NCBI GenBank assembly: GCA_000708835.1
Contig: DF237042.1
Span: forward strand, 1-64,000
Reading direction: 5' to 3'
From: Klebsormidium nitens
Lineage: Eukaryota; Plantae; Klebsormidiophyceae
Length of the DNA: 64,000 nt
The notes below the pieces were generated by a model. The model saw nothing but the letters and a program-made list of their open reading frames with translations, ran no database searches and was not told where the DNA came from. This document shows positions 1 through 34,796 of the stretch, one piece after another. The stretch's first letter is position 1, and the number at the start of each line of letters is the position of its first letter. The position numbers were made by a program, and so were the translations under genes.

Positions 1-1695
1 AACCAGTCGTAATCGTTACACTCTTGCTGAGGTGATCCCAAGGCGTGCTGAGAAGCTTCGCATGGTTTCCGCACATGTGAAGTAGACAGGCAGCGTGTGA
101 CCCTGTCCAACCGTCACAAATTGAGTTTATGTAACAAATTTGTGAAATTAGTTTTGAAATATCAGTGTTGTAGCCGTTCTGAATCCTTAGAATCCTTTGA
201 TCGATTCATGCCTTGCATGATCGACGACTCAGCAGCTTATCGGGCGGCCTAATTTAGGCGGCGAGTCCTAGGCGGCCCCGGGGCTCATCCAAATACCTAT
301 CCGGACTGTACGTGCACCTCACGTGCACCATTAGTGCACACTCACAAGGCCGGGTAGTCGGGAGAGCGCAAACTTCGGGCGGAATCATAATGGTATATAT
401 GACAATAGGTAGTTGTTCAATCTACTTATGCGCATCTACTATGCAATGATATGTAGCTAGCTTTGAGGAATATTAGTATAGATCGAGCTAATTTCCTAAC
501 TATAGCGCATGCATGTTATAGAAAAGCTAGATATAATTGTCGACTTCGCCATGCAACTGCGAAATGCGACGAAAGTTCAACCAAACATGCAAAAATTACT
601 GTGATTTCCAACGAACCGTCTTTTAGGAAGTGCAATGTATGATGTATAGGGGCCCTCTAGCTATACTGACCGCGCACATATATCACAAACGAACTACATA
701 TATGCAATCACTTAATTGCGTGCAGCTATCAATCGATGCACTGATGTACCAGCGCGGCCAAGGTGCGCCCAAGCTACTACTTAATTTAAGAGCTACATAT
801 AGCTCGCAACGGATCGGGCCCTAGCAACTTATTTAATCTATTCCTAGACGGCCATATCCTTCGCCTTCATGTTCAAACATATACGTGTGCGGGTATTTAG
901 ATATCTGGAGACTGAACTTATATAGGCCATGAGCAATCATAATGTGTTGCTGATGAAATGGTACGTCCGCGCGTCAGATAGAATTAGCGATCACTATACA
1001 ATATTACTTTTTCTCAAAAAATATACGACCGATAGTTGCCAGTGTATCAGGGCTTGCCAGAGTCAAAATATCCATGCAACTCATATATAGCCTGACAGCA
1101 TGCCTTTATGATTTCTCATACATGCGATTTATGCAGATGATGGATGATGGGCGGCGCGCTTCGCAATGATATTCACGCAACAATGTAGTTTGTTCAAAGT
1201 CTCGTGAAAAGTCTTTGGGCTCACGACAGTTGTGAGAGCAGCCTGAGCCTGTTGAAGACAGCTAGGCCGGGCTCCATTGCTTGCACCACCATCTATTATC
1301 AAATGTTGTGATAGGTAAAGCTACGCAAAGTTACAAATCATTGAATCTAACATGACTTTCTGGTTGCAATTTGGCGCTGCACAAAGTCAAGTGTCTATCA
1401 TGCTTTCTTGAAGCGATACTTGGAGGCTCGCAACCTATTGATCTGTAATGTTGTGCTTTGGAGTGAGTGGTCTACATACAAGCAAAGAATTCCGAACCTG
1501 TACAGCAAGGGACACTCGTCATTGGCACGTACACATTCGCAAGACAAAGCTAGCACTTGGCATGTAGACGGACTTGAAAAATCAACTCACTCACCTGAAG
1601 CATCCTTTGATCAGATCAGAGTTGATGCTACTTGACGTCTCAACACTGTAGAGGCCCTGTAGAGGCTGGTCGCATTCGTCTCAAAGTGCCCACCC

Positions 1696-3539
1696 TCAAC
1701 AACAATTCCCTGGTAGATTGGTTAAAATCGAGGACACCATGTACAGCGAACATGCCCTGGCAGATTTGTGCAACAGGGTTCTCACTCTGCAAGACTGCAA
1801 ACTTACAGTGGGGACATCGTCAGCCAGAAGTTGCGCCAGCTTCCCACAGTCCTTCGAGCATGGGCAGAAAGAGTCAGCACATATTGCATCAGCATGGCAG
1901 CCACTAGCTCGTTGGCTTCGCTCCTTATGGACAAACCAGACATCGTGAAGACAGCAGCGATAGATGGCAGCACAGTGGATAGAGGTAGGAGGCCCACATG
2001 CCCGGCCCATCACTCCCCTGTCCTACACCCCTCACCGCAGGGCCCCCAGCCAGAAGGCCGCGGTGGCCAGGCTGAGCAGCAGGGTGGCAGCCACGAGCGC
2101 GCGGTGCAGGACGGCCCGACTGCCAGCATGCAGCACTAGGCCGCCACACAGAATGGCCCCAGCAGTGGATACGTCTGCACGTTGACACCAACAGGTGCTA
2201 TGCGGCCCTAGGATACGAGAACCTGCTGCCGTGACATGCGGGTTGTGGAGCTGATTCCAGGCTCTCTTTGCTTTCATGAGGCGATCGATGCAAGTTTGCT
2301 GTCAGCTAGTTCCTCAAAGTACACAATATATTGACTGCACATCATTTAAGAACAACACTTGTTGACGCGTGAGGAAACACAAAAGCAGAAAATATTCTGA
2401 AGCCCTCATGTTGGTTCACCAGCAGGCCCGCCTGCCCCAAGCCAACCGTCCGACAGCCTGCTTTGTTGAGTGTACTCCGCACACTCACCTGCGACCACGG
2501 TGGTCCCCTGCGACAAGACTCCTGCGAAGTGGGCATGGTACTGCTGCAGCACCACGCACACCGGGGGTCACTTCTCGCAGCCAACAGCACCAGGCTGCCG
2601 CAACTGGCACGCAACGGAGCCGTCGCTCGAGATCATGCTTGTGACAGCCCACATTTCTGGCACAGCCCAGCTCCATGCCAGTGCTCCATCACTGGGGGAT
2701 CCCCTTCTGGGGGCAGCCGGCTCACCCTTTCCCACGGCGCGCGCGCTTGCAGTGCGGCAGAGCGCAAGAAGAAGAGCGCCAGCCCAGCACCCAGGAGGCT
2801 GAACACCCCCCGCCACACGCGGTTTTGAACAGCATTACTCCTCTCCAGTGACGCAATGATCTCCTCCTGCTCTGCAACAGGGGCCGAGGGCGAAACACGT
2901 CAGGCAGGATGCAGCAAGCAGGGCAGCAATTTGCTCTGGACCTTCCGATGGACCTGATTGGCATGCAGGCGTTGCCCGTTGACCATGCTGCTAGTGAATC
3001 AAGGGTTGACCTTGTAAGAAGTGCCTTGTTCACCAATTCTGCATCTGCCAAAAGGATTTCAAGCCAAGGTGCAGGGTGATAGAGACTGGATTACATGTCC
3101 CTTAAGAGCTTTGTCTACATTGTCCAACCTTGCTTGCAATAGAGCAGTTCTGCAGTTTGGTGGTGGGCAGTCTGATGCCCAGAACAACTGCATTTTTGAC
3201 GTTTCAAAGCAAAATTCACGTACTATCCCATGGCAGAAAGTGGAATCGAGTGATGCTGCTGGAAGAGCAACTACAACAAGCTGCCGCCTGCACCACCCCA
3301 CCATCAACGAAATCATATAATTAGAAAGTGTGCTGACTGGAACACCAAGTGGTCCAGAGCAACTCCTGATGGATACACAGACCTTACTACAAGTGCGCGT
3401 CATCTCAGTTCACGATCCTCACATTCCACTGACCATTGTAGGTTGTACCACAAAGTTGACCAAAGCTGCATACTCTCATAGGTAGCGAGCAGGAGTCACC
3501 TTGTGTGTCCAGGTAGTCTAGGTTACCGCTGGGGTCCAT
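1696..3539 (-). CDS. Small hypothetical multi-pass membrane protein (5+ exons; 3' end uncertain)
   Basis: Phase-consistent GT-AG exons 3539-3500, 2871-2726, 2543-2489 and 2174-2036 give MDPSGNLDYLDTQEQEEIIASLERSNAVQNRVWRGVFSLLGAGLALFFLRSAALQARAPWERQYHAHFAGVLSQGTTVVADVSTAGAILCGGLVLHAGSRAVLHRALVAATLLLSLATAAFWLGALR, with three hydrophobic stretches. A further exon probably lies near 1850-1806 (TVGSWRNFWLTMSP). The last exon is unresolved. Confidence 0.6.
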
Positions 3540-22983: not shown

Positions 22984-24721
22984 CCCCCCGGGGCGCACAA
23001 CAATAGTGGCCGGAAACCGTGTGTACAGAACGTGCGGGGGACGGTTGTGGTTTAAGATGGGTGCGTCCTCAGCAGGACAATGCGAGTTACTTGTTTGAAT
23101 GAGCTGGTAAGGCAAGTGTTTTTGGAACCTATGCTGTTCAACAGGCCAGAGTAAGGTCTGTGTTTTCCGGACTAGTTGCATACTACCTTTGTCCAATCTA
23201 GTCGGGACTAAATCCATCATGTTACAACTCAACAAGATTTGCTCAGGCGGCAAGCTTTGCCCTTGTGAGCAAGTGTTCAAGGAGTCACGGCCTGAGCGGA
23301 GTCTTATGCCGGGTGAACCAATGGGACAGGCTGCCAGAGCGGTGTCTGCGCTGAGCTTCTGGTTGCACTAAGGCTGACGGGACTCTAGTCCAAGCGCGTT
23401 GTGATGGAGTCTCTGAATTCGTCTGGCCGGCCCTGCGCAGGATTGTCTAGCTTGCATGAAGCTACCGTCTCGATTTTCCCTGCAACGTTTGCCACGATCG
23501 GATTGCGCCCTTGATTGCCAACGCTAACATGTATAGCCGCAGGACATTCAAGGGGATTCTTGTAGAAGAAGGTCCAGGGCACCCTAGCCGCTGCCAGAGC
23601 TAGATCAGTACGATGGCTGTCCGATCGCATAGGCTGGCATGCAAGCAGAGTTAAATCTTCGACTGAGAACCGTGACTAAATTGAGAATATGTATTGCCAA
23701 GAGCGGAGAGTAGCACGAGCCTGTGTTTTATCCCTCGAATTTATATTACGCGATTTAATTGGACCCATTTCGCGTCAAAGTTTTAGATGGCCCACGGGCC
23801 ACAACCTTCCTCCCGGCCAATTTTGCTTAAGTCGTCCTTTTTCTTCACAATCTCCGATCGATCGCATGTGCAGCAACTTATTGCCCTTTATAACCCTTTA
23901 TATATAATTAGGGTGACCGTCAAGATTCTCCCGTCATTTCACGCGTACCGTACGGAGAAGGAGATTGTTAAGGAACAAGCCAGTGGCTGTCGCTTGCACC
24001 TGGCGCTGCCGCGGCACCGACTCGCAGCTCAATGTAGCGCCCGCCCGTTTGAACGGTGCTTGATTAGTAGCTATACCGGGGGGGGGGGTATGCGTTCTTA
24101 CATGGTTCATTGAATCCGCGCGGCGAGCCCGAGTTGATCGGACGCAGACTTAAGACTCGAGGGCCGGGCGCCGCGGCTGCGCACTCTTGGCTATTCAAAT
24201 GAGCTAATTGAGGCCGCCTTTGAATCCACTACATCTCAACTCGGAAAGCGCAAAATTCGGATCCCATGCAATGGCTGACGGGCCCCATGTCACGCACGCA
24301 CTGAATAGGTATCCAGGCCGGATTCTTTAGGGTCCAGATCTGGAATTTAAGCTGCTTGGCCGCGCTCTTATGTATATGGTTCAGCGCCGGCCCCTACAGC
24401 AACGGCCTGCCGGGCATATAGTAGCGTGCATGCGCTCCGTAATTGGACAAGCTCGGGTGATCGAGCGCCTAGGACGAGCACATGCACGGGTCTGACCATC
24501 ATGGCATGTTATCACATGTTATAATTGCAGGTCAATTATTGATTCTCTTTGGATGCCTGCAGGCTCAGTGATGTGCGATTTGCAACGCTTACAACCGTTG
24601 AGCCTACATGGAAAGACGGACAGCATGCAGGATTAAAGACCTCCGAACATCCCAAGCCTGAAGAATCGACCACCCCTGCCCCCCGGCAATCGACGACAGG
24701 AGCAGATTGTCAGACTTGTGT

Positions 24722-27700
24722 TCAACCGGCTTCCCCAGGAGTCAGTTTTTTGTACGTTACTAGTTGCTTCATTATATGCGCCAAGAGCGCCTTGGCTGTA
24801 TGAACGCTTGCTTCCTCGGACGCGCCAATTCCCTGCAACCACGTGGCAATGAATGAGCACACGTCACACACTAACTGATGCAACGAGTAAGGGGAGAACA
24901 ATGTTGGAGGTGGGCGTTGAGGGTTGGGAATAGATCACATGTACGACATGACCAGATTGAGGGACTTCGTTTCCAGACAGAAGCAGGTGTCGATATTTTG
25001 AATGAGCGAGCATGCAAGCTTTTCCGGCCCGCCGTCGTGTCACAGCACCACATAACGGACCAGAAGGCCATGGAAGGCGTGGTTCTCCTTGCAACTCTTA
25101 CCTTGGGCGTTACGCCGCAGATCGCCGAGCCTTCTATTGCATAGAAAAGCAGATCTTCCTCCGTCCCCTCCAGACACTGCAAAACGTAAAGTCGATCAGG
25201 AACGCCGTCCGCATTGCAATACTCCCTTATGCTAACAAGCACCACAGATACAGAAGAGACAGAAAATTTGTCAAAAGACATGGAGACTGTTCAGCACCAC
25301 GAGCGGAGAAGAGCAGGGCCCGTCGACAGACTCGGTCTACAGCCCAGCATGCAATCGTGGAAACAAAACGGCCAGACTGCCAGGCAGCGAGAGGGTGCCG
25401 CACCTTGTTGGTGAGCGATGCTAGCCGCACGGCCTGGCCCGCAAAGGACTCGTCCAGGTCGAAAAGTTCGAGAGCTGGGGGGGGAGGCTCGTGAAGGGCG
25501 GGCGGGAACACCGCGGGCTGGAGGGGCGGAAGCGGCGTCTCGAACTGCATGGCAGCGAGGAGCAGCGGTCCAAGTCAGCCGGCGAAACACTCAAAAGGCC
25601 CCCAATGGCGTTGAAGAAAAGAAACTAAGAGCAGATAGAAGCTTTTTCCCGCTGTCATGAAAACTGGGGATCGTTTCCGTCGGGTGAGGCGACTGGTAGC
25701 GGGAAGACCGTAAGACCGAGTCGGAGGACGACAGCAATGGTCGCGAGGCCGCCTTGAACTTCAGGGATCCGGGACCCCGCCAGCTTCTCAAGATTTGACG
25801 CCCCGCTCACGTTGGGGTGGATGAGCGTGAGCGGCGCGTGCTTGACGGCGAGCTTGGCGTAGAGCTGCGTGGCCTCCGGGATGAGCGCGGTGTCGAGGCC
25901 GAAGAGGCGGTCCTGCACGAGCGCGGGCAGGTCGCGCGGCACGTCGTCGCCCTCCTGCAAGCACGCGCGCACACGCCCCGCCAGCGCCGCCATGTCCGGC
26001 AGCGACACCGCCTCGCCCGACACGTCGGGCTCCTCCGCGTCGCGCGCGTGCAGCTGCGGCCACGGAGGAACGCGATGAGGACGAGACTCGCAACAGAACG
26101 GTACGCACGGGACTTCCGCCGGGTATCATGAATCGGCCGGAATCCGGTGCGTTCTCCACCTTTTTGCGTTCCTCGCCCTCTTCCTGGCAGCCGCACAGAG
26201 AGTTCCTCTGCAAGAGCACCCCCCCAATCCGGGAGAAGCGGCAGCGGGCTAAAAGGGGACGAGAATTTGTACTGGGCACCTCTTCATGGTAATTTCTTTA
26301 TTCAACATAGATGCAAAGGGTCTCTTTAGACCTGCGGGCTCCTTGTTGGCCCTGCTTTGCCGCTGCAAACGTGCCGCAAACAGCCGTGCTCTCATAAACC
26401 CCGAAAGGTGACTGCGGATGTGCCTTGCAACAAAGCGGCATCTCTAGAGGGCTCGTCTGGAACGGCTTGCCAGTCTCTCCCTGGCCCCTCGCCTGCCGCA
26501 TGCCTAGAAAGCAGCCACGGTTCTTGAAAACTGACCACCCGGCCAGTCAAATAGTCAGAGACCTTAAGTGTGGCGCGCACCTCGAGTCCGCCCTCGGGCA
26601 GGAGCCAGCGGAAGAGGAAGTCAGCAAGCTTGCCGTTCTCCTCCTTGTCCAGCCACGCGTCCGAGAACATGAGCGCGCTGCCCAGCACCGCCACGCGGCC
26701 CTGCCCCGCCTGGCCCTGCCACACCGCACCTGCAGCGCAGCGCACGTGCAGAAGCGGTGAGGCAGACACGTGGCGAAAGGGAGTGGTGAGACGCTTTCCG
26801 ACTCAGGAAGTAGGTCGACCCGCTTCCAGAGTCCGCAGACACACCGGAGCCAAGACAACGTCAATAGGAGGGACTTTTGTCGAGTGGGCGGAGCCCAGCG
26901 GAGGGCTCGTCACAAGAAAAGGGCATATGGCCAAACTTGCGATCTCAGATAACCCACAACTTCCTGTCAAAATCCAGCTTCAACCAGCCGCACAAAAGGC
27001 AGGTCTGTCTCTCCTGCACTGCATCAGACTGGGAACTTGGCGCGCGCGCGTCCTTACCAATCGGGCGGTGCATTGGGTATGCAATCTTGCCGGTGGACAG
27101 GATGGGCACGGCCGGCCGTTGTACTGTGAGCGTGCATCCCTGCGGGTAGACCAGCGGCAGAGCGCCGCTCGCGCTCGGGCCGTGGCCGTCCACGCCGCCC
27201 TCGTTCAGCCACCTGCCAACAACAAAGAGGAGCTTACGCCCTGAAGCTGCCTGCTGCAAAAGTCTCGATACAACACCAACCGACAACAGTTGATGAGGCT
27301 AGCTTGAAGTTTGCCATGATCTGACACTGGTGAGTGTGGGCAAGGTCGCAACACTTACTTGGCATGCTGCCCCCCGCTTAGAGTGCTCTCCCCTCCTCGC
27401 CCAGATCTGCCGCCGCCCTGCCAAGTGACCACACATTGGGTCAGAAACCCCGAATTTTATAATCATTGTGAGAAGATTACACACAGCTGACTGCGTGGTA
27501 TGCTGTCTTTCGTCAGAATTCAATGGCAACAATCTTGCTGTTTCCAAGACCCGTGTATTTGCAACTTTATAGCTGAAACACGCTGGCACAGCAACCAACT
27601 TCTGGTTTGACAACATAGTTCTGCACATTCTCCATCTTGCAGAAGCAGCTCGGCAGGGGTGGCTCACGGTGGCAAGTGCGCGGTTGAGCAGCCCGTCGGT

Positions 27701-28563
27701 GATGAGGACCTCCTTGGGGTGGGGGTACTTGTGAAACACGGTGCGCACCACGCTGTCAGCGTTGACCGCGATGCCCAGCCCCTCTGTGACCGCATTCACC
27801 CCGCTGCCCGCGCGCTCGTCGCCGCCCTCCCCCACCAGAAACAGCAGGCTGCCGCCCTCCGCAACAAAGCGGTGCAGGACGTCCACCTGTAGATGAACAG
27901 TGCAGACAGCTGGCGATGTTACACTGTGAGAGAAAGAGCTACGCAGGTCTTTGATCAGCAAAGAAGCTGGAGCCAGCACTGCAAAGGGGCATACAGGGGA
28001 CATTGTCTCATCCTTGTTCAGGCACTGCTGGAGCTGGCAACTTTACGACTGTAGGGCTCTTAGCATCTGGAACGGGCCAGTACCGGCTGGGGCTGGCAAA
28101 CGCCAGCTCCTGGCTCTCAAGGACAACAGGCTTCAGGTATTTGCGCGCCGAACATGAGCGCACTTGCCTCCGTTGCAGAGAAGTCCTCGCGCGGGCTCCC
28201 AAAGACCACGATTGACGCATCCGCCAGTCGCTCCGCCGTCAGCTCATCCTTGTTCCTGCACGCAAGAAAGCCTCAGGACTCTTTCCTCCAGATAATTCAC
28301 CTGATTGCAAAACCACTCGCCTGCAACCCAGCCACTTGGCAGTCCTTTTCCAGCAAAGCAGACCACTCCTCAACGCTATATCTTTTTGATATGAGTCCTA
28401 GTCATGTGGTGGAACCACGTTAAGCAGTTTTCAGGAATCTAAGAGTATGTTAGCTTTGGAGGCCGATCCCGGTGGCAGGTGAGAGGGGCTTACTGCTGAG
28501 CTTTGAAGATACCCCGTAAGCGCCGCGAGAGTTGTTTGAAACCACTAGTGGGTGTGTATGTCT
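24722..28563 (-). CDS. IFT52: Intraflagellar transport protein 52 (first exon not firmly located; candidate ATG at 29168)
   Basis: Exons encode SGFKQLSRRLR, FGSPREDFSATE|VDVLHRFVAEGGSLL..VNADSVVRTVFHKYPHPKEVLITDGLLNR, LVYPQGCTLTVQRPAVPILSTGKIAYPMHRP, VLGSALMFSDAWLDKEENGKLADFLFRWL and FETPLPPLQPAVFPPALHEPPPPALELFDLDESF. Stop is at 24722. Confidence 0.93.
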
Positions 28564-29222
28564 CTGGACAAGGAACAAGTAGCAATGTATTAGAAGCCAC
28601 AGTGTATCAAGTTGTGTGCAGTATGACAAGCATGATGGCCTCTTGGCCATGTTTGCTGGGTCTCAAAGTAGCTTCAGTACTTTTTGGGAACTGGAGTAGG
28701 ATACCCCAACTTGCATACCTTCTGAAGGAAGGAGCAAGCTGCACATTGTATACTCAGCATACAGGTGCTGCGCACAGCACTCAATCTACTCGCAATTGGC
28801 GTGCTCACCTCTTTTGACTGCATCGAACAGGACCAGCACCTCCCCCTCCCCAGCTGACCCATTCATGGGGAACACATCCGGCCCCATGCAGTGAGAGCCA
28901 CACCTTACCCTGCCAAAGTTGCAGCTGCACTGCGAGACTCACAAGAGCTTCTCCCAAGTGCTCCCCAAGCCAGCTCCCTGGACAGCTCGCTCGAGTTACC
29001 TCATCAGTCTCCCAAGGCTCAGTCAAAGCATTCAACAGGCCTCAATTTGATCAATTGTCCACTTTGCGTGTGGCTCACTTAAGCTGGACATTTCGATTCT
29101 GGGCTTCCCACAGCTGCCTCTTTGACCCTTGCAAAGCGTAGAGCTGTGTCCGCCTTGCTGCCCAACATTCTGACTTCTGTGCTGAGCTTGTGCCAATTGC
29201 ACTGTGCTGGCCAGCTTGCATG

Positions 29223-29231
29223 AAACCCTAA
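29223..29231 (+). promoter_or_regulatory. Telo-box (AAACCCTAA) just upstream of IFT52
   Basis: Exact AAACCCTAA motif in the presumed promoter/5' leader region. Function is inferred from plant telo-box literature. Confidence 0.35.
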
Positions 29232-30776
29232 ACGAGGTTGGTGTCGTTTGATTCGGACGTTGACACTTCGATCGAACGCGTCGGACTCGAGAGTGCTCGG
29301 CCCGGGGGGCCTGCGCCGAGGTTCAATCGGACGCTCTGGATCGAGTCACGGGAGACCTGCGCGGCTCCGCGCAGTGCCCCGGGGTCAGCGGGCGCCGGCA
29401 CGGAATAGTTGTGTTAAAGGACCGGCGATATCCGAGTACCGGTCAAAGTTGCCGTGCGCGGCCGCCGGCGGGCCCCGCGCACGCGCAGACTCAGCCGCCG
29501 CCAGCCTAGCTTGGCACATCGGCACGCAAAATACAGGAAAACTACGCTGCTGCACTAGTAGCTGATTAGCAGTACTGCCAGCTTAGGAAGGACAGAGCCC
29601 TCAGCCAGGGCCTTTATCCTGACGTACTCACGTACGTACCTACTTCCACCGTTTGGTTGATCTCGAAGTTCGAAAGCTCTTCAAAAGTGTAAATGTTGTA
29701 TGCGTACAGCAATCTAATAATATAATCTATCAGAAGGATTTCACTTCGTCATTTAGCTAGTGATGCAGCTTCCTTCTCGCATGCGGAAATGCATTCAATG
29801 ATGTCATGTGCACGAACCCTGCTCGATCGTGGACGGTGAGACGCGGTGATTGCACACGTTTACTTCTATATTTCGAACCGTTGAACCATTCTGGGACCAT
29901 TCTGATCGACCAGCCATGAACCACTATGAGCTTGAATACCGTATGAGATCAGTACCTTCACTACGTTCCTCGCTCACTGAGACTTCGACGTCAGACAAGG
30001 TGCACCGTGATGCTCGCTAGAAGTTCATTCGCTCATCTCGGCGTGCCATATACTAGTCTTTCGGGCTCCGAACTTTGCATCATGACGACGAGGGAAGAAT
30101 CAGTATTAGGGACCGCGTATACTAACCAGTCAATGATGCGGCACGAGGTCAAGCCAGACGGGCCGCAGGCGGGCTGATTGTGCATCTGCTGATCTGCACA
30201 TACACGTCACATATGCAAAGTCTGGCCCGAGCTATAGTCGAACATGGCCAGAAAACTTCAGCGCGCGTGGCAGCGTGGATGTGACTTATTCACAAATCAT
30301 TAAACAGACACTTTACATTCCAAGCTTAGGCTGTCGAAGCAGTTCGAGGCAGTGATTTGTTCAATGAAAAAGGGTTTGGAGCTTTGAAAGCTTTGCTTTT
30401 TGGCTTTCTAGTCTTAGAACTCGTGAATACGTGAGGTTCAATGGTGATGGAAAGTATGACTGCGGTTCCAACACTTTCATGATCTGTTGAGCTGGTATTG
30501 AAATTATATGTTATTGCCAAGCTCAATAGCACACTTGAAAATCTCAGACCGTAGGTGATTGACATTAGTCTGGAAAACCCCTCAATGCTTTGAAGACTCA
30601 GAAAGCAACTTGTACTCCCATATGGTTGCGCGATTTCAATGGACAACCCTCCTTATGCAATAGATAGTGGATAGAACGCGTGAACGCTCTCAATCTTGCG
30701 CCTGCAACTGCTAACGCTCTCGTTGACGCTTAAATGATTAAGATTATATTGGCCAATCAGTTTACCAGAATACTTG

Positions 30777-32079
30777 TCAACGTAGGCCCCCGACGTACCG
30801 CCGCGGCACTCTCCGGCCAATGTTACATACAATCTCGTAGCTGATGGTCCCTGCCCACTCCGCCACTTCCGCGGCATCGATGCTCGCCCCCTGCTGCTCT
30901 CCCAACAGCACCACCTCATCCCCTCGCGTCACCCCAGCCACGTGCGTGACGTCAACCATGCAGTAGTCCATGCACACCGTCCCGACCAGCCGTGCTTTCT
31001 GCCGGCGCACCAGCACATAACGCTTTGTTGCTCAGCGCGTGCATATACCCATCACCGTAACCAACCGCCAGCGTTGCGATCTGGCTGTTGCGGTCAGCAT
31101 ACCACTCCGTCCCATAGCTGACGGGCTCTCCGGCCGGGAGGGTACGGACCGCAACCACCTCGGTAGTCCAACGGAGGGCGGGGGCCAACTTTAATGGGCA
31201 GGGTTTACCCTCTAGAGGATCCAACCCGTAAAGCGCTAACCCGCAGCGTACCAGGTTTGCGCCCGCTTTCGGCAGGCTGAGGGCGCCCGGGCTGTTTGCG
31301 AAGTGTAACCAGGCCAGGTTAAGCCCACAGGAGGTGGCGATCTCCAACGCTTCCCGCCACCGGTGAAGCTGCATCCGGTTGAAACCGTCGCTGGGGCTAT
31401 CCGCGTTTGCGGGGTGCGTCATGAGCCCATCGATGCTGACGTTCTTGAACCGCGCGACGCTCTTAACGAAGGCTGCCAGATCGCGGCAGGGCACGCCCGC
31501 TCGCGCCATCCCCGTGTCCACCTCCACGTGGACCTTCCACGTGGCACCCGGCCTCACAGCCGCTGACAACGCCTCAAACTGATCCACTGTGCACAGCACC
31601 GGCGTCAGATCGAAATCCACCATCATTTCGTAGGCCCCCTCGTATGTCTGCCCCCAAACGAGGATCGGAGTCTCAATCCCCGCTCTCCTGAGTTCAATTG
31701 CCTCTTCCACGAGTGCCACGCCCAGCCATTCCGCCCCTCCGGCCACCAACGTTCTGGCGACCGGAACCATTCCGTGCCCATAAGCATCGGCCTTGAGTAC
31801 CGCGCACACTGCCGCACGCGGGGCCACCTTCCGGACCACCCGCAAGTTGTCCGCAATCGCGTCCAGGTTGACAGTCGCGAAGCAGCGCCGAATGGGTGCT
31901 GGGACATCTTGCTGCGACGCTTCGAGGGGGTGCACTTTTGCTCGCGCCTTTTGAGCATTCGCTATCGAAGTTTGGGCACCTTCTTCCTGGCAGAGGCAAG
32001 GATTGAGATGTTCCACGGCTGAGATTGACGTCCTTTTGATGTCGAAAAAGAGCCCAATCGGCATCGCATCGTACACCAA
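30777..32079 (-). pseudogene. alr: Bacterial-type PLP-dependent alanine racemase, intronless core, with one +1 frameshift at ~31020
   Basis: ORF 32079-30952 has ATVNLDAI, the PLP-lysine motif AVLKADAYGHG (K at 31792-31794), LGVALVEEAIELR, VDTGMAR, GLMTH, VRCGLALYG, the catalytic Tyr in GEPVSYG (31114-31116) and LAVGYGDGY. The C-terminus YVLVRRQKARLVGTVCMDYCMVDVT..GDEVVLLG..GTISYEIVCNIGRRVPRRY* continues in another frame to 30777. Family assignment is secure; pseudogene versus sequencing error is not. Confidence 0.9.
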
Positions 32080-34796
32080 TGGCTACTGTCCAGGATTGCT
32101 TGGATAACGTAATTCCAGATGAAATCGCAGTCACGCCAGCGGGCTTGCTCTCGTTCAGACTTTTGAATGGCTCTGTTCCTGGCTGAACATTCCTTTGCAT
32201 CTTCGTTTGTCTCCGGAACCAGCTGAATTGGCAAATGACAGCAAGCATACAAGCAATGATTAAGGAAAGACTTCAAGCCCAGATCAAAACAACAAAGTTC
32301 GGGCCTCTATTGAACTGAACCTCCTGAGCATATACACAATGAACTCCACGTTGTCGACCCAGCCAATACAAACGAGAGAGTGTATGCAGATTGGGTCGGC
32401 AAAAGACGTGCGCACCAGAAGTTCTACGGGACTCACTCAATCAGGAACACCCTTTCTGACTGCGCTCGAGCTACTGACAAGCCTTGACAAGATTCCTTTC
32501 CTTCCCTCCCTTTTCAAATGGCTACTCAACCACTGCCATCTGTGGGTTACTCTTCAAGAACACAATTTTGGATCGAGACAATCATGAGTCCAAGAGCACA
32601 CGCCAGCTATACAATCACTTCGATCAGGAATCCGACCTTCAAACTTCACGAGCCGCGCTGCCCAAAGTTCCATTCAGTCGCTTTAAGTCTTGGCTCACAA
32701 TGCTTGCTTACCCCCCTTTGTGCCGCCTGCAGCGCTTCTTGCTCGCCATCCTGCATTTGTTCACACAACATCGCAGACTGTACTGACGTCATGGTGGCAG
32801 CTCAAAGGTGCTCAGACTGCATAGGCCTACTCCTGCGCTGCTTCACCCTGGACCATGCTTCCAGCTCAGGCACTAGGGTCAAAGCTTAGACTGTTACGAT
32901 GCCCAGGTTCAACATACCAGTTAATAGTGCTTTCTCGTTCCTAACCTGCCGTGCCTTACACGTGGTGATTTGGGGCTTAATCTGCCCAAACTAAATATCT
33001 ACTTGTGCTGGAGGTGACTGCTGGGCATGATCACATTCAAACGAAAATCTGATGGGGAGCTGCATGAGCTGATGGTGACCATATAAGCGCCACATATGCG
33101 CTAGCTTGCCGGCCCATCTTGAGGTTGTCTGACAGATGCTAGCTAAGCACCTTCCAAAACCGTACCATATTCTGCAAGGATCCTGGGCAGAAAGAACTCA
33201 GCAGCTCACAGCCATTGTCGCATACGCAGCTTTTGACTTGACTCTCTCAAATGAGAACGCAAGCAGAGTCGAAACACCAGAGTCCGTCGGACGTGAAGCG
33301 TTACACAGCGCGCCTGCCTATATATTGATCACGGTTCAAGTCAGCCAATGATCGCGCCAAAGTGCTTGGGGCCAACATTAACCTTGTGACCTTAGCATGC
33401 TTCTGTACTGCGCCCTTCCTACCTAGTAGTATATATTAGGTACGTATACGCATGGACTCCGTCATAGATGGCTTCCAGCTGCTAGCGACCGTTGCTCATG
33501 TTTCTCATAAGCTTTGACCTTTTGCTAGATGGCAAGACAACCTATAAGGTAAGGCTAAGTCAGTTCTGCATGCATGTTGCATGCGACATAATGCAGCGTC
33601 TCTGCAGCATGCATGGTGAGTTAGCTAGCTGGGAATCTCTTTCGTAGACTGGCCGAGCATTGAAAGCGGCAATGATTGCCTCGGCAGCAACTGCAGCGGA
33701 GCCCGTACGGTCGGTGATCAACACGGTCGGAGATGGGCGTACCGTACACAGGCCGCGCGCTGCTTTGACCGTCTAACCTCTGCTCGAGAGTAATCGAGAT
33801 AAGGAGTCAGTGAGACGCCTTCTCCTTACCAGTTTCCGACTCGTTCCAGTCGGAAGTTCGATTTCAGGTTCCGGAAGGGGTGCTTTGTCTCGAGATATTG
33901 GAATTTGGAGCCCATTTGCATTTGACGGCAGCTTTCTTTGTTGGAATATGGCGCTGTGCCAATCTGGCGCTCGGGCGGCCGCGTTGGATTGAATGGATTT
34001 CGAGGTCGCCGTAATGCACCGTGGCCTTTCCCAGGGGCTGCTATGGAACGAGGGCCGGAGGGCGATGATCGGATGATTACTCTAGCCCTGTACGTGCAAC
34101 CGTTTCAAGCCAAAATTTTGGTCCAAAAAAGGGGTTGTCGATCAAAGGTATGCAACTGGAAAAGCTGACGTACCATCAATTATCTTAGGAAAGATTGCAC
34201 CTGTGTAGGAGTATGACTTGATCTATCCCGCTAGGTCTGAAACGGGTTACCCCCATACATGTTACACGCCTCGAAGAGCGATCAGAACATGCCACCATTC
34301 TGACAGATTGTACACTAAGCCTAATATACAGGATCGACCGAGAAGTTCGACGCAAGCTTTGAGTTGGCCGCCACGTCCACCATGATATGTACATTCCATA
34401 CTTGGAACAATTCCTCGAGCGATCATTTTGGAAAACGTCATTTCAGTGGTTGGACGCTTTGCAGCAAATTCTCATTACGTACAGCTGTGCCAGTGGTTTC
34501 GGGACAAGTCTTTGGAATGTGGAATATCTCCCTCTTCTTTAATCGTGCTCTGTTCAACAGAACGGTTCGCCAATTTATCAGTATTTCGATCATAATAACT
34601 ATGACTCCTTCGTGGCGCACAACCTGGTACAACTACCTATGATTTTCAGAATCCTTTCGCTGGCAACACAGTCCAACGTTCAAACAATGTCAGCGCTCTC
34701 TAGTTTCTTCGAGCTTATCTTGGCTACGCGTGTACGGCATCTAGCCTGATCTCAGCCGCCCGCGTGGCAACTGGGCACGGCTTGTGCAGTTACGAA

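Follow-up and report, generated by a model that had tools for sequence, protein, structure and literature searches.

A bacterial-type alanine racemase gene in the nuclear genome of Klebsormidium nitens, probably acquired from a Myxococcota-like donor and frameshifted in the reference strain

Among D-amino-acid enzymes, alanine racemase (Alr) is one of the most often transferred, and its passage from bacteria into eukaryotes is recurrent, with cases described in fungi, in Schizosaccharomyces pombe and in the rotifer Adineta vaga (Naranjo-Ortiz et al. 2016, PMC5169069). The gene described here, from the alga Klebsormidium nitens, records an event of the same kind, in which a fold-type III racemase of bacterial origin has become a domesticated nuclear gene. 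It differs from those cases in its recipient, a streptophyte alga with reported plastid peptidoglycan, and in its donor, which is apparently Myxococcota-like; neither Klebsormidium nor Viridiplantae is mentioned in that paper. A second point of comparison comes from the same alga. In their moss work, Dowson et al. 2022 (PMC9434261) discuss the missing glutamate racemase and name a K. nitens MurI (GAQ85716.1), which, like Alr, is a bacterial-type D-amino-acid racemase absent from most green plants and relevant to the peptidoglycan stem peptide, but which, unlike Alr, is PLP-independent and belongs to a different family. K. nitens Alr is not mentioned there.

The closest described enzymes are the bacterial biosynthetic alanine racemases (TIGR00492; structures 1vfh and 1sft), with which K. 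nitens Alr has in common the two-domain architecture, the PLP lysine motif, the catalytic tyrosine and the near-invariant residues. Its TIGR00492 score, 341 bits when summed over two pieces, equals those of true bacterial members (338 bits for the bacterial relative P0009). Unlike bacterial Alr, however, the gene is nuclear, includes an intron and a 5' exon, and adds a 59-residue extension to the N terminus of its product; in the reference strain, its frame is broken at position 31020. The gene had already been deposited: a protein search gave a match of 100% identity to GAQ81860.1, annotated 'alanine racemase' of Klebsormidium nitens and located on a 210-kb scaffold. In the literature searched, no paper cites GAQ81860 and none that names Klebsormidium discusses its Alr; a search for the run and metagenome identifiers used below likewise found no paper. 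All coordinates refer to the window, by which we mean the whole stretch analysed, positions 1 to 64,000 of contig DF237042.1 (assembly GCA_000708835.1).

A racemase core in an algal gene

The bacterial-type Alr core occupies 31986..30777 on the minus strand, where an earlier note, made from the letters of the sequence, had placed it. Pfam Ala_racemase_N (PF01168) matches at 2.8e-66 over profile positions 1-220 of 220, and Ala_racemase_C (PF00842) matches in two successive frames, over positions 1-61 (4.4e-16) and then 55-127 (2.5e-26), so that the whole C-terminal beta domain is encoded, with a frameshift inside it. Two pieces likewise tile the NCBIfam alr equivalog TIGR00492 without loss, at 2-293 and 295-368; the cut-off of this model is 168 bits, and the N-terminal piece reaches 269.3 bits by itself. 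Models for DadX, VanT serine racemase and broad-spectrum racemases score far under their own cut-offs. The closest solved structure is alanine racemase 1vfh (1.1e-51), in which the PLP lysine and the catalytic tyrosine align with those of the algal protein. Both residues are conserved: the lysine, in the KAxAYGHG motif, is encoded by AAG at 31794-31792, and the tyrosine, the base contributed by the partner subunit, by TAT at 31116-31114.

The earlier note had described a complete core with a set of named motifs. The motifs hold, since GYGDGY, CMD and TISYEI are all present, but the core does not form one open frame, because of an extra T at 31020. Of the 48 columns conserved to 93% or more among about 200 bacterial Alr sequences, K. 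nitens retains the residue at 46. R316H and G328R, which flank the frameshift, are its sole replacements at 97%-conserved columns. The intact enzyme should have the chemistry of an alanine racemase: a fold-type III, PLP-dependent homodimer predicted to interconvert L- and D-alanine with the lysine and the partner-subunit tyrosine as bases.

The same note had called the gene intronless. This is true of the core, which contains no intron, but not of the whole gene, in which a further exon and a 725-nt intron precede the core (Table 1). An independent 20-kb Logan contig from a second Klebsormidium species (L001, run SRR23617307) carries the same gene at 85% identity and conserves the start context of exon 1, CCACCATGAC, its 27-codon frame and its GGGG|GTAAG donor; in K. 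nitens an in-frame stop lies 3 codons upstream of the exon 1 start. The donor of intron 1 and its polypyrimidine-AG acceptor are likewise kept in L001, with an interior that does not align. Splicing of intron 1 is thus predicted from the gene model and these borders, as no RNA-like contig lies within 31862-32758 and no read spans the intron 1 junction. At the other end of the gene, similarity between the two species falls directly past the Alr stop.

Table 1. Features of the K. nitens Alr locus in window coordinates.
Feature	Coordinates	Strand	Description
Upstream stretch	33272..32793	- (tentative)	RNA-like contig X5 rec9 (32759-33272); closed in the exon 1 frame
Exon 1	32792..32712	-	27 codons, ATG 32792-32790; starts the N-terminal extension; from tblastn of GAQ81860.1
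Intron 1	32711..31987	-	725 nt, GT..AG, phase 0, precedes the core; predicted, from gene model
Exon 2 to break	31986..31021	-	32 extension codons, whole PLP-barrel domain, first half of C-terminal domain
'Intron 2' of GAQ81860.1	31251..30999	-	253 nt, frame-restoring; its removal costs 84 codons, the catalytic tyrosine among them
Extra T (GCG-T-TAT)	31020..31020	-	+1 frameshift relative to L001 and all homologues; from DNA alignment
Post-break C-terminal segment	31019..30777	-	original frame, YVLV...CMD...TISYEI..., ancestral TGA 30779-30777
Premature stop	30954..30952	-	in the shifted frame, after 22 out-of-frame codons; ORF 30952..32079
3' untranslated region	30776..30529	-	at least 248 nt; RNA-like contigs X5 rec5 (30529-30693) and X6 rec11 (30615-30872)

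Contigs from two RNA-like runs (X5 and X6) cover the 3' untranslated region, the core and the exon 1 region, and cover neither the intergenic stretch 29302-30509 nor intron 1. Their RNA label is an automatic guess, and the contigs are short, with a depth that cannot rank genes; it is this exon-only coverage that argues that the runs are indeed RNA. One of them, X5 rec9, reaches 480 nt upstream of the Alr start codon, and 32793-33272 is possibly a long 5' leader with upstream ATGs or else a separate upstream transcript. Rfam gave no match in the whole window, and no tandem repeats were found between 27 and 36 kb.

The neighbourhood is that of an alga. IFT52, split into exons, adjoins Alr downstream in the window, and an Rpb1-like gene also flanks the locus. 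The linkage recurs in L001, where both neighbours accompany Alr and the exon blocks match those of the window at 88-97% identity. The IFT52 block is inverted between the two contigs (24693-29002 in the window, 3770-7956 in L001), with the Alr and Rpb1-like blocks keeping their relative orientation, so that Alr and IFT52 lie on the same strand in the window and are convergent in L001. Contigs from a DNA run tile 29000-33500 without a difference and cross both junctions, at an even depth of 16-20 that is also the depth of the flanks.

A bacterial-looking protein with an intron-free core might bring to mind bacterial contamination or a chimeric assembly. We regard either as vanishingly improbable and, in practice, excluded, because the linkage to IFT52 and the Rpb1-like gene recurs in an independent assembly of another species, the 5' exon and its intron are conserved, and the DNA depth is even across the junctions; the exon-only RNA-like contigs argue the same way. 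The K. nitens Alr is a nuclear algal gene, with the features of a eukaryotic one: a conserved exon 1 and GT..AG intron, untranslated regions and RNA-like contigs confined to exons. Composition cannot discriminate its origin: GC3 is 0.73 in Alr, 0.76 in its bacterial relatives and 0.86-0.93 in the IFT52 exon pieces, which are very short samples.

The frameshift, the deposited model and selection

The extra T shifts the frame after ...SNKA; with that base removed, the frame is open to the ancestral TGA with no further stop. Position 31020 is covered with 0 gaps by one DNA contig (X1 rec2) and by two RNA-like contigs (X5 rec6, 30886-31036, and X6 rec12, 30957-31140), and runs of three studies, one of which may be the source of the assembly, contain in full (5/5 words) an 81-nt sequence with the extra T at its centre. 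The contigs that cover the position are short, with a low depth of 2.4-4.2. We conclude that the extra T is real in the K. nitens reference strain. The K. nitens runs are probably all derived from one culture strain, to which the frameshift may be restricted. One uninterrupted frame for the whole protein, absent in K. nitens, is present in three more distant relatives (P0003, P0121 and P0122; see below).

In the reference strain the main transcript would thus yield a protein lacking its last ~80 residues, among them CMD and the tyrosine of TISYEI. In Alr structures this segment holds the Met and Asp of CMD and a tyrosine that binds the PLP phosphate, and with these lost the truncated product is most likely inactive; it is from their absence that we infer a loss of Alr activity in K. 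nitens.

The deposited GAQ81860.1 (345 aa) has no such truncation. It maps to exon 1, intron 1 and an exon from 31986, and then removes an 'intron 2' that spans the break before a last exon ending at 30780 (Table 1). Both borders of this 'intron' are crossed by unspliced, collinear RNA-like contigs (X6 rec13, 31115-31283, with X6 rec12 and X5 rec6), and no joints were reported in the run contigs over the Alr locus. We conclude that GAQ81860.1 is a prediction artefact, produced when the gene-finding program skipped the frameshift. Were the 345-aa spliced form instead a real product, it would be a protein without its catalytic tyrosine in some new role; the GT..AG borders do exist and removal of 253 nt does restore the frame, but three RNA-like contigs run unspliced through both borders, and in L001 the same stretch is coding sequence like any other, under constraint and free of a frameshift at the site, so that we give this form hardly any credence. 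The analysis of the locus thereby corrects a database gene model: GAQ81860.1 should not be treated as a working enzyme, and a widely used reference strain carries a broken copy.

Comparison of the window with L001 indicates that the gene has been under purifying selection. Across Alr, dN/dS is 0.186 at a dS of 0.456 (synonymous excess, p = 4e-21), with 108 substitutions at the third codon position against 38 and 29 at the first two. The N-terminal extension is less constrained than the core (dN/dS 0.38), and the segment downstream of the frameshift (30777..31019) is under constraint like that on the rest (dN/dS 0.17, p = 4e-5). Among the amino-acid changes that could be assigned to a branch, 15 fall on the K. 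nitens branch and 13 on that of L001, and the lineage-specific rate excess that we sought in K. nitens among these changes was not found. Since dN/dS is 0.19, the gene should have been functional until recently, and the simplest reading would be that it functioned through nearly all of the divergence and then underwent very recent inactivation.

These data also bear on whether the K. nitens gene could still be fully functional, by ribosomal frameshifting, by a minor corrective splice or because the extra T is a recurrent sequencing artefact. There is a single lesion in about 400 codons, constraint persists even past it, and nearly all near-invariant residues are kept. However, the extra T is present in contigs of three separate studies, both DNA and RNA-like, with no joints; the only GT..AG intron that would restore the frame deletes the catalytic tyrosine; and both replacements at 97%-conserved columns flank the break. 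We therefore consider full function improbable and favour recent inactivation.

The L001 copy has a lesion of its own: at about 1754-1775, within the barrel domain, a four-G run is shortened to three, splitting Alr into ORFs of 79 aa and 312 aa. This deletion would be a second, independent frameshift in a constrained gene, and inactivation was perhaps independent in both sampled genomes.

Relatives and origin

Three sequences from two JGI metagenomes and two Logan runs (P0003, P0121 and P0122) group with Klebsormidium at 63% identity. Each is an unbroken ORF, 408-409 residues long, that also bears a related N-terminal extension. P0003-type contigs are sparse, and among their ORFs are a split patatin gene and a nucleoporin-like frame of FG repeats, features which together argue that P0003, P0121 and P0122 come from a eukaryote. 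A Pfam search of ten ORFs of this second lineage matched only a split patatin exon, and its contigs show no synteny with the window besides Alr itself. The FG-repeat ORF, a 649-codon frame at 1207-3156 on the minus strand of contig L087, consists almost entirely of FG/GFG repeats with a basic tail and has no Pfam match. Two pairs of contigs (L002/L003 and L087/L088, from JGI metagenomes 3300060284 and 3300060285) carry P0003 and P0121 as intact alleles, 96-97% identical and with the same neighbouring ORFs, which suggests two haplotypes or two strains of one eukaryote.

We placed these sequences in a quick tree (202 rows, LG+G4) and in two careful ones (121 rows, LG+G4; 60 rows, LG+C20+F+G4). 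The five eukaryote rows form one clade in all three, with support of 100/100 in the 60- and 121-row trees and an SH-aLRT of 100 in the quick tree. In the 60-row tree, this clade is sister to the bacterial sequences P0004, P0006, P0007 and P0009 (98/85), the last of which lies on a dense bacterial contig. It falls within a 20-row clade with Myxococcota MAGs (100/99), and within a 34-row clade (93/89) that contains all 8 labelled Myxococcota, including Anaeromyxobacter and Myxococcaceae. Nine cyanobacterial sequences, a sample made up entirely of Leptolyngbyaceae, form a separate clade at 100/100. K. nitens Alr is 49-51% identical to its sister bacteria and 41% identical to one cyanobacterial locus.

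The phylogeny had been proposed earlier as the way to tell an endosymbiotic from a horizontal origin, and the trees favour horizontal transfer, with the eukaryote clade nested with support in a bacterial one. The main competing account is vertical inheritance from the cyanobacterial ancestor of the plastid, with later loss from the majority of the other green lineages. A nuclear location and bacterial ancestry are indeed found in other genes for plastid peptidoglycan, and an approximately unbiased (AU) test in which eukaryotes and cyanobacteria were forced together did not reject that union under LG+G4 on 121 rows, where it cost 49 log-likelihood units (p = 0.125). Under LG+C20+F+G4, by contrast, the same constraint cost 53 units and was rejected (p = 0.0027), in the maximum-likelihood trees the eukaryote clade lies within a Myxococcota-rich one at a depth of five well-supported nodes, away from the cyanobacteria, and identity is higher to the sister bacteria than to the cyanobacterial locus. 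Moreover, the best 120 protein-search matches include no named eukaryote other than K. nitens. A vertical origin is, in our judgement, highly unlikely.

Acquisition of Alr from a bacterium is thus well supported by the trees, in agreement with the earlier note. Its impression that the sequence looked myxobacterial rather than cyanobacterial also gains support, from the Myxococcota-rich placement and from the AU test under the richer of the two models: the donor was most likely Myxococcota-like, with the qualification that MAG labels can be wrong and that the cyanobacterial sample is narrow. A scan of metagenome contigs with the algal-clade alignment yielded, among the matches listed, only bacterial relatives, at no more than 50% identity. 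The closest bacterial Alr with a long genomic context (L084; GCA_030012885.1, JASCQV010011607.1) lies in a dense, operon-like stretch with genes for pyruvate kinase, MlaE, an ABC ATPase and MlaD; its assembly comprises >11,000 contigs and may be that of a host or a metagenome, of which the bacterium forms a part.

Domestication, probable loss and a possible role in the supply of D-alanine

Taken together, we think it probable that the K. nitens Alr is a nuclear gene derived from a Myxococcota-like bacterium, domesticated and maintained by selection in the genus, and recently inactivated, though still transcribed, in the reference strain. The transfer would have preceded the split of K. nitens from the second Klebsormidium species, and the same acquisition would be common to the further eukaryote lineage of the P0003 type. 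After the transfer, the gene would have gained its 5' exon, a spliceosomal intron, the N-terminal extension and untranslated regions. Purifying selection indicates that its activity mattered for most of the history of the genus.

Plastid peptidoglycan has been reported in Klebsormidium (Takano et al. 2018, as cited in PMC9434261 and PMC9954125), and in Arabidopsis the D-Ala-D-Ala ligase is located in the plastid (PMC9954125). The 59-residue extension of Alr, with 8 acidic, 4 basic and 6 Ser/Thr residues and an abundance of Gln, Glu and Ala, does not look like a typical transit peptide. A cytosolic Alr could nevertheless feed the peptidoglycan pathway, or it could use D-alanine released by neighbouring bacteria. 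Should the reference strain make a plastid wall despite its broken allele, Alr cannot be its sole source of D-alanine.

It is conceivable, although we would sooner doubt it, that Klebsormidium and the second lineage recruited a Myxococcota-derived Alr as the D-Ala source for plastid peptidoglycan, and that the reference strain and its relative have recently lost it through independent single-base frameshifts. Were this true, the recruitment would fill a step that has no known enzyme in mosses and other streptophytes, and the recent losses would mean that streptophytes have a second route to D-alanine.

More generally, the locus adds a clean, datable bacterium-to-alga transfer. A bona fide Alr, kept by selection in an early-diverging streptophyte, would be a concrete candidate for the supply of D-alanine in streptophytes that have plastid peptidoglycan. 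The reference strain, with its broken copy, must obtain D-alanine otherwise, if it needs it at all.
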